64,000 nt of DNA from Octopus sinensis (lineage: Eukaryota). Under the pieces are notes generated by a model that did no database searches, was not told the origin of the DNA, and saw only the letters and a list, made by a program, of their open reading frames with translations. The stretch is taken from NCBI RefSeq assembly GCF_006345805.1, contig NC_043007.1, positions 30,752,001 through 30,816,000 on the forward strand, read 5' to 3'. Below, piece after piece: positions 47,059-55,760 of the stretch (position 1 is the stretch's first letter; each line of letters begins with the position of its first letter). Made by a program: the position numbers and the translations under genes.

Positions 47059-47084
47059 TTAGGACCTAAGGATCTTTACAAAAT
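47059..47084 (-). CDS. Calmodulin-like gene 2, last coding exon: (D)FVKILRS*
   Basis: Minus strand ttttcttgtgtttcag|AT TTT GTA AAG ATC CTT AGG TCC TAA. Phase 1 completes YDDFVKILRS. With an ATG exon the CDS totals 450 nt (149 aa), the same length as CaM. Confidence 0.88.
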
Positions 47085-47605
47085 CTGAAACACAAGAAAA
47101 AAATCAGGGTCATTTAATGTCTGAATCTGAATAACAACAACAATAACAATAATAATAATAATAATAATTTAACTTTATTTCTATCAAAAAAAAAAAATGA
47201 ACGAACTAGTGAGTTTAGTTTAATGGCCTACCAATGTATACAATGAGTTTCTTTGCCCTAGGAGTCTGGAAGACACTCGGCAAGAAATGGAAGCAAATTT
47301 GAAAGAAGAAGAAAAACCCATAAATAATAATAATAATCCTTTCTACGAAATGCACAAGGCCTGAAATTTTGGGGGAGGAGGGGATTAAGTTGATTACATC
47401 GACCCCAGTGCTCAACTGGTACTTATTTTATCGCCCCTCAATTGATGAAAGGCAAAGTCAACAACATCGACAGAATTTGAACTCAGAACATAAAGACAAG
47501 TGAAATGCTTCAAAGCATCTTGCACAGTCTGCTGACCATTCTCCCATTTTGCAGCTCTAACGACAATAATAATAATAATAATAACAACAATAATAATAAT
47601 TATTG

Positions 47606-47643
<38 letters not shown>

Positions 47644-48703
47644 TCAAATTTTTGCCACAAGGGAAGCTTGGGGGAGGTGAGGGTGAGTACTGAATTTATC
47701 GACCCTGAAAGGATGAAAGGCAAAGTCGACCTCAGCGGAATTTTGAACTCAGAACGTAGCAGCAGACGAAGTACCTAGACAGACGAAATACTGCTTAGCA
47801 TTTCGCCTGGAGTGCTAACGTTTCTTATCTCTTTATTGCCCACAAGGGGCTACCCATAGAGGGGACAAACAAGGACAGATAAAGTCGTTTATATCAACCC
47901 CAGTGCGTAACTGGTACTTATTTAATCAACCCAGAAAGGATGAAAGGCAAAGTCAACCTCGGCGGAATTTGAACTCAGAACGTAGCGGCAGACGAAGTAC
48001 CGCTAAGCATTTCGCCCGGCGTGCTAACGTTTCTGCCACTTCACCGCCTTCAATAACAACAACAACATTTCTAAAGGATCAAGTTGATACTGAAATCTAA
48101 GCTAAACTCTGGAGATATTGTGAAGAGAATAAATTGAAGGGCTGCAGCAGCAGTTGTGAGATATGTGGCAGGGGTTTTGAATTTGGAACAAAGAGGAACT
48201 GTAAGATAATGATTGGAAACCTCAGAAAATAAGGGACGATGTACAAGGGGACGAATAAGTGAAGGGAAGAAAAATTGAGTTTAAAAAATGGTTTTGAAAA
48301 CATTCATCAAGGGAGATAATCCTAGCAAACCCCAGTGTGTAATCAAGGGGAATAACTCTGGCTTATAACAATTATTGAAAAAAAGGAACAGGTGATTAGG
48401 GGTTATTATGTGGTCCTTCAGCTTTTGAACATTTCAGACACGGGAGGTTATATTTAATATTGCAGTACAGTTCACATGCAAAATAAAAATTTAGAAATAA
48501 ATATTTTATAATTTAAAAATTTAGAAAAACAGAAAAACTATAGCTTGTGTTATTTTATGAATCAAAACTTGTTTTAAACCACAACTTTGATATGGATTCT
48601 TTAAATACTTCAACTAAACTTTTTTTAAAACAACACAAAACCCACCTACCTTTGCAGTATACTGTTTGACAAATAATGAGATACACTGTGTGTGTGTGTG
48701 TAT

Positions 48704-48734
<31 letters not shown>

Positions 48735-49097
48735 AGTAGTCTAAAGGAATGAGTGGTTTTCATCATCACGATAGTTTTAACGTCCACTTTTCCATACTTG
48801 GACAGAATTTACTGAGGCAATTTTTCTCAAGGCTGGAATACAGTGACCTCGACAGGATTGGAACACAGAATATAAATGGTTGGAACAAATAGCAAAATAC
48901 AGTTTGTACAACATTTTAATGCTGCTGCTTCTCTGGCACCAGAAGAAGGGATCCTACCTGAGCAGAACCTCGGAGAACAGTACAGACAGGAGACAAAGAA
49001 TCCATAATTTATTTACAGGTTACTGTTATAGAAAGCTGAGCATCAAAATAGTTTCTATAAATGATACGCAAGATCCACGGAGGTGTTGAGGTGGGTT

Positions 49098-49601
49098 TTA
49101 ATCCCTTAGGCATTCTGATTATTCTGTCAAATGTAATGCATATTTATTCCCATTGTCTTCAATTAATCATGCATTATCTCTTAGCTTCAAGACTTCAATG
49201 ATATGATTCTTTATATTTACTATAATATACCAGTGCTGCCTTAACTGGCATCTATGCTGGTGGCACATAAAAGTACCATTCAAATGTGGTAGGTGCCAAC
49301 CCCCTCTCACTCCTGAGCCGGTGGCATGTAAAAAGCACCTACTACACTCTCTTGGGGTGGTTGGCGTTAGGAAGGGCATCCAGCTGTAGAAACACTGCCA
49401 GATCAAGACTGGAGCCTGGTGCAGCCATCTGGTTCGCCAGACCACCAGTCGAACCATCCAACCCATGCTAGCATGGAAAATGGACGTTAAAGGCTAATGA
49501 TATTGCTGAGTAGGTGTGAGATGTTGGATCTGGCCAGTTTGAATATAAGGGAGGCAGAATATTTTGGCTGGATATGGCCAGTTTATATAATAAAGGGTTA
49601 A
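49098..49601. mobile_element. piggyBac-like MITE with a nested family C SINE (about 49235-49497)
   Basis: Ends ttaatcccttaggcattc ... taataaagggttaa (TTAA plus CCCTT terminal repeats). The interior is interrupted by tggcacataaaagtacc...gcatggaaaatggacgttaaa. Confidence 0.7.
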
Positions 49602-49689
49602 ACCTGGTGACAGACTAAGACTACAGCCCCCAAAACAGGTACAGTTCAAACGGGTCTCTACACAGTATCAACCTACCCAATTTCATTCA

Positions 49690-52888: not shown

Positions 52889-53032
52889 CACTGCTATCAA
52901 TGGCGTCTCGAATATTTTTCACTTCAGCTTCTGTAGGACTGTAACCGATCGCTCGCATCACGGTTCCAATGTCTTGTGAGAAGATACAGCTGTCTCCATC
53001 TTTGGCAAACACAACACATGCCTCTCGGCACA
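52889..53032 (-). CDS. Calmodulin-like gene 2, exon with degenerate EF1 and start of EF2: (L)CREACVVFAKDGDSCIFSQDIGTVMRAIGYSPTEAEVKNIRDAIDSS(G)
   Basis: Acceptor ctactctttctag|TG and donor G|gtaggt. The exon is exactly 144 nt, phase 1-1, and GTVMR.IG..PTEAE matches CaM. It is the end of ORF 52881..53330. Confidence 0.93.
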
Positions 53033-53124
53033 CTAGAAAGAGTAGCACATTGGTAGACTCAGTCATGACATATATGTGTGTGTGTGTATCATCATCATCA
53101 TCATCATCATCATCATTTAGCGTC

Positions 53125-53181
<57 letters not shown>

Positions 53182-53729
53182 CGAGGAGAGGGAGAGAGAA
53201 AGATATAGATACACACACAAATATGCACATATACATACATACATACAAATATGCATATACATACATATATATACACATGCATACATGAATACAGACATAC
53301 ATACATATACATATATATATACATATACACTCAACCTCACCACTCCAAGCTGCCCTTGTGGCAAAAATTTGAAATCAATATCATTATGATTGTTGTTATT
53401 ATTATTATTATTATTATTATTGAGTGAGAGAGCAGTGCATGCCATCAAAGTGATACTGGGGTAAAATATACGAGGCCCAGTATACCCGTCTGATAAGGGT
53501 ACACTAGGCACATGCATCACAACCATATGTCCACGACATGGTGATCTCATATCAAGATAAACAGTGCATGACCTTGCAGGTGGGGCCCAGTTAGAATTTT
53601 CTTCAGGTTGAGTAGCCCATCCCACTCAAAAGTTCCCCGAATAAGGGTTGTTTAAGGATGTTGAAAGAACCACCCATGTTTCCAGAGGTGAATTATTCAA
53701 ACCTCAAAGTATCCCTCTCAACACATGGC

Positions 53730-53774
<45 letters not shown>

Positions 53775-55726
53775 CCACGAGCTTCAGAGGCATTAGAAGG
53801 TCAGGCTAAATACTTAGCAGCATTTCACCCATCTTTCTGTACTGAGTTCAAATTCTGCCAAGGTCAACTTCACCTTCCGTCCATCTGGGGTTAATAAAAT
53901 AAATACCAGTTGAACACAGGGGTCAATTTAATCAACTTACCCCCTCCCTCAAAACTGCTCCCCTTGTGCCAAAATTTGAAACCATTATTATCACTACTAC
54001 TACTACCACCACCAACACTACTACCACCACTATTACTACTACTACTACTACCACCACCACCGCCAACACTACTACACATCAACACATATGTTGTTATCTC
54101 ACTGCAGGTAAAAAGGAGGGGGTGTGGATATGCTCAAACTGGAAACCTGGTCCCAACACTTCCACTAAAACTGTCTGAAGGGCCAGGTGGTGCTGTTAAA
54201 CCACCCATAAAACACACACAGCTCACCTCTTTACACTCTGTGTACCCAGGTGACCCATTTACAATATGTACCCAGCTGTCAGCTCCAGATTATGCACAGT
54301 CGATATTGACAGGAGAGACAGTAGGTCGTGTAGACTTCAAAGAAATGAACTGATGTATTCATTGCCAGGACTGTTGTAGTGGTGTTTGAGTGGTGGTCAT
54401 GTTGGGAGTGGGGTTTCAGTACACAAACATGAAGGACCAGAACTGACTTGGGGTTAAACATCTAGTATGTGTGTGCATGTACATGAACACACACACATAT
54501 ATATGTACACACACACACACACATACACACAAGTATATATTCACATAATATATATATATATATATATATATATTCTTTTAGTCGTTTATTTCTTTCAGTC
54601 ATTTGACTGCAGCCATGCTGGAGCACCGCCTTTAATCAAACAAATCAACTCCAGGACTTATTCTTTGTAAGCCTAGTACTTATTCTGTTGGACTCTTTTG
54701 CCGAACTGCTAAGTTACAGGGACATAAACACACCAACATCAATTGTCAAGCGATGGTGGGGGGGTCAAACACAGACACACACACACACATATATATATAT
54801 ACGACAGGCTTCTTTCAGTTTCTGTCTACTAAATCCACACACAAGGCCCTGTTTCATCTACTCCGCATTTCGAAAATGCGGAGTAGATGAAACAGCGACA
54901 ACTGATGAAGGGGAATATTCTTTATGTTGTATGTCTCGTTTCTCTGTTTTTTTCGTTGTTTTAAAAAAAGTTCCTTTCTATGTTTTTGTTTTTATGTTTT
55001 CGTTTCTCATTGTGTTCAACGTTTTTTTTTTATGTCCTGTACCCATATATGCATGTATATATGCATGTAGAGGTAGGTACGTACATATATTTATATATTA
55101 TTTATATTATTATATGTATATATGTGTGTGTGTGTGTGTGTGTGTATAAGTGTGCATGTGTGTATCTGTCACCCCACCATCACTTGACAACCTATGTTGG
55201 TGTGTTTGCATCCCCATAACTTAGCAGTTCAGCAAAAGATCGATAGAATAAGTACTAGGCTTTAAAAAAATAAGTTTTGGGGTCAGTTTGTTCGACTAAA
55301 GGCAGTACTCCAGCATGGCCGCAGTCAAACGACTGAAAAAAATACAAGTAAATATATATATGTATACATATATATATATACACATGTATCCATATACTGT
55401 CCTACCCTGAGGTTGATCCTTCTCTTCCATACATATTCTCTCTCTCTCTCCTGGAAGAAAAGGAGTTTTGATCAGACCTAGAGAGGGATGGGCACCACCA
55501 GGTTTGACAGTGTCTAAATTAAGTTGGGCATCATGAAAGTATCGCTATCACCCCACCCAGCAACTGAGGGTCCAGGGAAGAGAGCAGCAAGGTTAGGGTT
55601 GGAGGTGAAGGTTAGGGTTAACAAGCAGCATCAGAGCTTAATATAAGGGTTAGCTTTGAGGTTAGGGTTCATATAAGAATAAGGGTAATTTTCAAAGACA
55701 GATGAATAAATTTGATAAAAACTCAC

Positions 55727-55760
55727 AGTCCATCTTTTCCCGATTCATTCTTGTTGCAGC
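55727..55760 (-). CDS. Calmodulin-like gene 2, N-terminal exon: AATRMNREKMD(L)
   Basis: Minus strand ttctctcatttcag|GCT GCA ACA AGA ATG AAT CGG GAA AAG ATG GAC T|gtgagt. The exon is 34 nt, phase 0-1, the positional equivalent of the 31-nt CaM exon 2. An ATG-only exon 1 was not found, and the internal ATG could also be used. Confidence 0.8.

Follow-up and report, generated by a model that had tools for sequence, protein, structure and literature searches.

A coleoid calmodulin duplicate with a remodelled N-lobe and a proposed light-chain role in Octopus sinensis

Introduction

Why should an octopus maintain a calmodulin-like protein of which one lobe stays close to calmodulin and the other has been extensively rewritten, and what might such a protein do? 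The gene that raises this question lies on the minus strand of a 64,000-nucleotide stretch of the Octopus sinensis genome (NCBI RefSeq assembly GCF_006345805.1, contig NC_043007.1, positions 30,752,001 to 30,816,000), referred to here as the window, and the four coding exons that the window holds fall between positions 47059 and 55760. The protein belongs to an established class, calmodulin-like proteins whose EF-hands are disabled, and is an uncharacterised though not surprising member of it. Orthologues are found only in coleoid cephalopods, namely Octopus, Argonauta and cuttlefish, which agrees with the lineage restriction proposed in an earlier, sequence-only reading of the locus. The evidence described below tilts, if modestly, towards a functional coleoid duplicate of calmodulin that serves as a dedicated light chain or regulatory subunit with a Ca2+-insensitive N-terminal lobe (N-lobe).

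The gene model itself is already present in RefSeq and ENA, as 'calmodulin isoform X1/X2'. With its initial methionine the predicted protein is 100% identical both to XP_029642598.1 ('calmodulin isoform X1 [Octopus sinensis]') and to the 149-residue CAI9730760.1 of O. vulgaris, and it is 98% identical to XP_014780632.1 of O. bimaculoides. Shorter isoforms of 144 residues (XP_029642599.1 and XP_014780633.1) begin at Met6, with the sequence MNREK, and both 5' forms are seen among cuttlefish transcripts. The name 'calmodulin' is misleading, because the protein is 50% identical to calmodulin, only two of its four loops match the PROSITE EF-hand pattern PS00018, and its N-lobe scores below the Pfam thresholds. 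Literature searches with the gene accessions and for cephalopod or octopus calmodulin-like proteins found no paper on the octopus gene.

A calmodulin-like protein with two unequal lobes

The membership of the calmodulin family is evident from four EF-hand units arranged in two lobes, a length of about 149 residues and calmodulin as the best match. Against solved structures the whole protein finds calmodulin chains with expectation (E) values of 1e-46 to 1e-48, and the N-lobe alone does so with E = 1e-17 to 1e-18. The 60 best matches obtained with the whole protein and with the N-lobe alone comprise only calmodulin and the calmodulin-like protein NB-1 (CLP), the latter (1ggz) being the best single match to the N-lobe. 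Troponin C was considered as an alternative and rejected, as none occurs among the top matches. Eight helices and four short strands in the loops, as in calmodulin, are predicted by AlphaFold, and when the model is compared with known folds by Foldseek the top matches include apo-calmodulin (1dmo at rank 1, and 1cfc) and an apo-calmodulin/IQ complex, with Ca2+-bound calmodulin complexes scoring E-values similar to those of the apo forms. At the level of the DNA, a tblastn comparison of vertebrate calmodulin with the window recovers the 243-nt exon with E = 1e-30 (60% identity) and the 144-nt exon with E = 2e-11, and the gene is therefore not a chance open reading frame (ORF).

Within this common framework the two lobes have diverged to very different extents. 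Identity to vertebrate calmodulin is 23/73 over residues 11-83 (about 32%) and 48/64 over residues 84-147 (about 75%). A canonical calmodulin would show more than 90% identity and four consensus loops, and in both respects the octopus protein falls short. The sequence-only reading was right that this is a true paralogue of calmodulin whose lobes differ sharply, and the counts given in that reading, including those of the methionines and Lys115, were reproduced exactly.

The change extends to the residues with which calmodulin holds its targets. Just two of the nine target-binding methionines are kept (M36 and M124), the others being replaced in the octopus protein as M51I, M71I, M72I, M76H, M109L, M144I and M145L; Met76 gives way to His or Gln, and the other six to Ile or Leu. 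Lys115 is kept. In the N-lobe, calmodulin Phe65 has become Asp and Phe68 has become Val. Replacement of Met by Ile or Leu would be typical of a protein with few, fixed partners. Calmodulin, furthermore, has no cysteine, and the octopus protein has four, at residues 14, 18, 28 and 104.

The EF-hand loops follow the same asymmetry. In EF1 (AKDGDSCIFSQD) loop positions 1, 6 and 12 hold Ala, Ser and Asp, with no variation among the seven orthologues. Every orthologue likewise has an EF2 with Arg at position 6 and Asp at position 12; an Asp at position 12 of an EF loop lowers Ca2+ affinity. Its ligand positions vary from species to species, with Ser, Asp or Ala at position 3 and Asn or Lys at position 5. 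Variation within the N-lobe is concentrated in helix C and in this ligand half of the EF2 loop, and the segment that follows, RKL-DQDV-SIISKQ, is invariant. Since the ligand positions drift and the flanking segment is fixed, what selection maintains there is something other than Ca2+ ligation. The lack of conservation at positions 3 and 5 likewise argues against EF2 as a selected Ca2+ site; together with the failure of the Argonauta EF2 to match PS00018, it indicates that Ca2+ ligation at EF2 is not under selection. EF3 is canonical in all of the species compared. EF4 has an invariant Thr at position 3, Glu at position 1 in Octopus only, and Asp at position 12 in the octopods.

The loss of EF-hand signatures can be measured against calmodulin and against a second calmodulin-like gene in the window (the neighbour gene, described below), in both of which all four loops match PS00018. 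With the Pfam model EF-hand_7, for which the cut-off is 30 bits, the octopus N-lobe alone scores 13.8 bits and the C-terminal lobe (C-lobe) 72, and the N-lobe of the neighbour gene, used as a control, scores 65.8; the octopus N-lobe lies below threshold for every Pfam EF-hand model. Taken together, the loops suggest one good Ca2+ site (EF3), an EF4 that is weak or lineage-dependent, and an N-lobe that probably does not switch. The description of the protein as having one intact EF-hand needs tempering on sequence pattern alone: the loops read as had been reported and EF3 is canonical, but the EF2 loop fits PS00018 and EF4 of the cuttlefish protein is nearly intact.

Conservation, transcripts and selection

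Has this remodelled protein been kept, or is it on its way out? The arrangement of coding exons of 34, 144, 243 and 26 nt, with its splice sites and reading frames, is intact in O. vulgaris, O. bimaculoides and Argonauta hians. In cuttlefish the orthologue is 82-83% identical and is encoded by an uninterrupted 435-nt ORF on RNA-seq contigs of 2-3 kb. The cuttlefish protein is indexed in 30 blocks of the sequence collection and 24 contigs were read; two source runs (SRR20545807 and SRR19578113) are documented Sepia esculenta larval transcriptomes. These contigs represent spliced mRNA, because the octopod genes hold kilobase introns at three places within the ORF, so that, for the orthologue in cuttlefish at any rate, there is the spliced transcript called for in support of the splice model. 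A further cuttlefish fragment, P0131, is unspliced and ends exactly at both boundaries of exon 3.

Word-indexed and profile searches with the N-lobe found no orthologue beyond Octopus and cuttlefish. Hits of 45-52% identity to the N-lobe (P0289, P0290, P0292 and P0295) were rejected as short, unrelated calmodulin-like fragments. An exhaustive N-lobe search of 50%-identity representatives returned generic calmodulin-like hits of at most 46% along with the unspliced cuttlefish fragment; it says little about distant orthologues, the family being probably represented there by a calmodulin-like sequence.

The ratio of non-synonymous to synonymous substitution rates (dN/dS) was estimated for each lobe by pairwise Nei-Gojobori comparison, and the shortage of non-synonymous changes was judged by a binomial P. 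For the N-lobe dN/dS is 0.02-0.12 across the octopods and between octopods and cuttlefish, rising to 0.24-0.28 when two cuttlefish lineages are compared, on few changes (about 16), and for the C-lobe it is 0-0.06; in the informative pairs the deficit reaches a P of 1e-7 to 1e-15 in both lobes. For instance, O. sinensis and O. bimaculoides differ by 27 synonymous changes and one non-synonymous change. Between octopods and cuttlefish the synonymous sites are saturated and the N-lobe is still 80% identical. In neighbour-joining trees the five coleoid sequences group together on a long stem branch, which is strongest for the N-lobe. N-lobe identity is 80-82% within the coleoids and 30-32% to calmodulin or to the neighbour gene, a pattern which indicates that the change came early and was followed by constraint. 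The protein is, in short, calmodulin-derived, with disabled EF-hands that are under purifying selection.

Known relatives and parallels

The canonical calmodulin and the neighbour gene share with the octopus protein a length of 149 residues, four helix-loop-helix units, the intron positions (an ATG-only exon, a phase-1 intron following exon 2, exons of 144 and 243 nt), a canonical EF3 and a C-lobe that is 73-75% identical. They differ from it in the N-lobe and in the loops, as EF1 of the octopus protein is disabled and its EF2 and EF4 are non-canonical.

Calmodulin duplicates have been turned into myosin subunits elsewhere. CALML3 (CLP) is a light chain of myosin-10. The N-lobe of Androcam, a tissue-specific protein of Drosophila, is closed regardless of Ca2+, its C-lobe binds two Ca2+, and the protein acts as a light chain of myosin-6 (PMC4914028). 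Like the octopus protein, Androcam arose from calmodulin by duplication, is confined to one lineage and has unequal lobes; its Ca2+ binding is concentrated in the C-lobe, a feature that is predicted on the octopus side. However, it is an insect protein of independent origin and not an orthologue, and its C-lobe binds two Ca2+ with high affinity, whereas in the octopus only EF3 is canonical. Vertebrate CALML4 binds no Ca2+ and is a Ca2+-insensitive light chain of myosin-7 (7a and 7b; PMC10579538). Both CALML4 and CLP are calmodulin-derived with degenerate EF-hands, as is the octopus protein, and both are dedicated IQ light chains; neither is orthologous to it, and CALML4 has lost all four Ca2+ sites whereas the octopus protein keeps EF3.

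Among molluscs, parallels are offered by XP_052057984.1 of Mytilus, 'calmodulin-like' in RefSeq, and by KAL4239137.1 of Mactra. The Mytilus protein has 52% identity to the octopus protein, a 243-nt exon and a degenerate EF2. It shares a number of derived residues that are not those of calmodulin, including RHVL (M109L), LSDEE, DIT-DG in EF4, FVKIL at the C-terminal end, SIIS in helix D and IG[YF]SPT. Unlike the octopus protein, it has an EF1 that still looks functional, and it is 59% identical to calmodulin; overall it is no closer to the octopus protein than calmodulin is. Its downstream neighbour is a GalNAc-transferase gene, and no such gene is present in the octopus window. A wider molluscan origin of the octopus gene is, on these shared residues, possible but unproven. 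Molluscan troponin C offers a further comparison, as a mollusc EF-hand regulator with one Ca2+ site in the C-lobe: in scallop and squid, site IV of the C-lobe is reported to be the only one that binds Ca2+ (see Ojima et al. 2000, cited in PMC5963113). It belongs, however, to a different family, and the intact site of the octopus protein is EF3, not EF4.

What kind of protein is it?

These features can be drawn together as follows. The gene arose by duplication of one of calmodulin type; a gene of the same layout lies about 41 kb away. Thereafter the N-lobe was heavily altered and then frozen by purifying selection, with the C-lobe staying about 75% calmodulin-like. With A1 and D12 in EF1, and R6, D12 and unconserved ligands in EF2, the N-lobe would no longer be a Ca2+ switch and may instead form a fixed structural or partner-binding module. 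The C-lobe, with one canonical site and a weakened EF4, would bind one, perhaps two, Ca2+. Targets would then be held in a largely Ca2+-independent manner through a closed N-lobe, any response to Ca2+ coming from the C-lobe, as in Androcam. By analogy, the protein most likely serves some target with an IQ motif, or one like it, as a dedicated light chain or regulatory subunit.

Several observations pull away from this light-chain account. The role itself is argued purely by analogy, and the AlphaFold model, of moderate confidence (a predicted local distance difference test score, pLDDT, of 74), does not separate open from closed lobes. EF2 fits PS00018 in both Octopus and cuttlefish (cuttlefish loop DRDGNRKLSDQDV), and cuttlefish EF4 deviates only at position 3 (Thr), retaining D1, D5, G6, N9 and E12, so that binding of more than one Ca2+, or of Mg2+, is possible. 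Exact look-ups with the 144-residue O. sinensis and the 149-residue O. bimaculoides isoforms retrieved no assembled octopus transcript, and the 90% identity cluster of the octopus protein holds genome-derived models only, so that support from transcripts is confined to cuttlefish. The loops could be read as those of a general-purpose sensor that takes up two or three Ca2+ at EF2, EF3 and EF4, with a shifted affinity or Mg2+/Ca2+ preference, and the positions of the hydrophobic pocket, all of which are still hydrophobic, would suit such a sensor. This reading is possible but rather unlikely given the drifting EF2 ligands, the failure of the Argonauta loop, an Asp12 that lowers affinity, a partner loop (EF1) that is disabled in all orthologues and an N-lobe that fails all Pfam EF-hand models. 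The missing octopus transcript, like the strong divergence of the N-lobe and the loss of its EF-hand consensus, might also be expected of a decaying duplicate or mis-predicted calmodulin pseudogene. That explanation is scarcely credible, and conservation and selection together refute it: none of the four octopod genomes shows a broken frame or a lost splice site, cuttlefish carry spliced transcripts, neither lobe has a dN/dS anywhere near 1 (P as low as 1e-15), and the N-lobes of Octopus and cuttlefish are still alike at saturated synonymous divergence. The signs of decay that would have marked a pseudogene are thus missing.

The cysteines suggest another possibility, that the N-lobe is a thiol-based metal or redox module in which C14, C18 and C28 (or His28) respond to Zn, Cu, Cd, oxidation or acylation. 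The four cysteines correspond to calmodulin F12, F16, T26 and A102. Their number was correctly read from the start, but only C14 and C18 are conserved across the coleoids, being invariant in seven of seven orthologues; position 28 is Cys in octopods and His in cuttlefish, both of them soft-metal ligands, and C104 is restricted to octopods, with Ala in cuttlefish. In calmodulin, Phe12 and Phe16 lie in helix A and contribute to the hydrophobic core or pocket, so C14 and C18 may be small hydrophobic replacements, and the simplest view of the cysteines would be a smaller, repacked N-lobe core rather than surface regulatory thiols. It is because C14 and C18 stand in for these core residues that control by surface redox chemistry or acylation, as first suggested for the N-lobe, has become less likely. 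Two cysteines at i and i+4 of one helix are, moreover, poorly placed for a disulfide, and residue 28, to judge from the alternation of side chains along a strand, should face away from the core. The module is thus improbable: the Cys/His alternation at position 28 is suggestive, and confidence in a metal or redox role for the N-lobe remains low. A more elaborate form, in which the N-lobe was rebuilt in the coleoid ancestor as a sensor or clamp on Cys14-x3-Cys18 and the Cys/His, responding to Zn/Cu or redox state and coupled to a single-Ca2+ C-lobe, would be a distinctly long shot. That the protein belongs to the myosin essential light chain (ELC) family proper is very improbable. The C-lobe has ELC-like residues, and the 52%-identical Mytilus protein XP_052057984.1 is automatically named 'Sulfhydryl light chain' in UniRef, but calmodulin aligns with 50% identity and 159 bits compared with 35% and 81 bits for the scallop ELC 1b7t_Z, every top match among solved structures is a calmodulin, and a separate squid muscle ELC exists (3i5f_C).

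Gene structure and surroundings

The coordinates of the gene and of other features in the window are collected in Table 1. Each of the four exons has a pyrimidine-tract/AG acceptor, and all except the last have a GT donor. Joined, they give 447 nt with no frame break, which translate as AATRMNREKMDLCREAC...DFVKILRS, and addition of the ATG-only exon yields the 149-residue calmodulin-like protein. That exon, whose presence had been presumed, was located just beyond the window with the help of the O. sinensis chromosome record CM016869.1, which is 100% identical to the window over 44059-64000. The splice model put forward from the sequence was borne out, with four exons in frame, good splice sites and a match to the RefSeq protein. 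The end of the coding sequence annotated in CM016869.1 maps onto window position 47059, from which the 3' untranslated region runs toward lower coordinates.

Table 1. Features of the calmodulin-like gene and its surroundings, in window coordinates
Feature	Position	Strand	Details
ATG-only exon 1	384 nt past 64000		ATG|gtgaat; 3001-3003 of the CM016869.1 extract
Coding exon 2	55727-55760	minus	34 nt; acceptor ctcatttcag|, donor |gtgagt; AATRMNREKMD and first base of Leu13; in-frame Met6 starts the 144-residue isoform
Coding exon 3	52889-53032	minus	144 nt; residues 13-61; helix A with C14 and C18
EF1 loop	52971-53006		degenerate; in exon 3
EF2 loop, start	52889-52898		in exon 3
EF2 loop, remainder	50355-50380		in exon 4
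Coding exon 4	50138-50380	minus	243 nt; residues 61-142; includes central linker
EF3 loop	50244-50279		canonical; in exon 4
EF4 loop	50138-50171		in exon 4
Last coding exon	47059-47084	minus	26 nt including stop; acceptor cttgtgtttcag|; final two bases of Asp142, then FVKILRS
Stop codon	47059-47061		TAA
Neighbour calmodulin-like gene	2938-3081, 3705-3947, 5718-5746	plus	144-nt, 243-nt and terminal exons
ORF in intron 1	59387-59794	plus	135 residues; Pfam zf-RVT, E = 9e-7, 29.9 bits (cut-off 27.5)
Interspersed repeats	49859-50028/56134-56303		70-83% alike
Interspersed repeats	47383-47549/47878-48041, inverted 53785-53938		70-83% alike
Inverted repeat pair	54551-54697/55234-55380		70-83% alike
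Microsatellite and low-complexity tracts	window-wide, e.g. 3125-3574, 18451-19004, 29108-29734, 33785-34633, 57495-58321		very dense; AT, TA/CA, AAT and GTA types

The layout is of calmodulin type: exon 1 consists of the ATG only, as is classical for calmodulin genes, the short exon 2 is followed by a phase-1 intron, and exon 3 has 144 nt. The statement that the exons have calmodulin sizes holds for the 144-nt exon but not throughout. Exon 2 of vertebrate calmodulin has 31 nt, as has that of the cuttlefish orthologue, compared with 34 nt in Octopus, and the 243-nt exon has the size of vertebrate exons 4 and 5 (107 and 136 nt) fused.

The O. vulgaris annotation assigns the gene 56 kb (3001-59293 of its extract). 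This span runs on for about 13 kb beyond the stop codon and includes an alternative first coding exon, MATLIFLQYGRHCGESLRNIQ, that precedes exon 2 by about 33 kb. A different upstream coding exon is predicted in O. bimaculoides. In their own genomes these alternatives lie 16-33 kb upstream; the two species do not share them, and neither is in the window. Two cuttlefish RNA-seq contigs, L003 (1-672) and L005 (2-895), have extra upstream ORFs of 223 and 297 residues, which may reflect assembly chimerism or a long structured 5' region.

The neighbour gene lies tail to tail with the gene described here, about 41 kb off. Over residues 12-149 it matches vertebrate calmodulin at about 90% identity. 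It is not a canonical calmodulin either, because its EF3 has DKDENG and it has LHHVM in place of LRHVM. The 2.9 kb that the window offers upstream of it yielded neither of its first two exons.

The remaining features are those of repetitive DNA. The ORF in intron 1 is probably a remnant of a non-LTR (long terminal repeat) retrotransposon, and the interspersed repeats in the introns and the 3' flank are probably elements similar to short interspersed elements (SINEs). The low-complexity tracts yield many spurious long ORFs, and G+C content is 26-44%. An ARAGORN scan of the window found no tRNA gene.

Significance

The label 'calmodulin isoform X1/X2' can mislead expression and proteomic studies that count this gene as calmodulin. 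As a calmodulin duplicate that would have become a partly Ca2+-insensitive subunit, it adds a further independent case beside Androcam, CALML4 and CLP, extending a known theme without introducing a new principle. If true, an N-lobe in which cysteines sense metal or redox state would make this a dual-input EF-hand protein unique to cephalopods.

The gene has been kept nearly unchanged since the split between octopus and cuttlefish, over which dS is saturated and the proteins remain 82% identical, a constraint that makes it almost certain that a specific partner exists for the remodelled N-lobe. The nervous, muscular and sensory systems of cephalopods are unusual, and lineage-specific components of Ca2+ signalling such as this one are candidates for a part in that biology.

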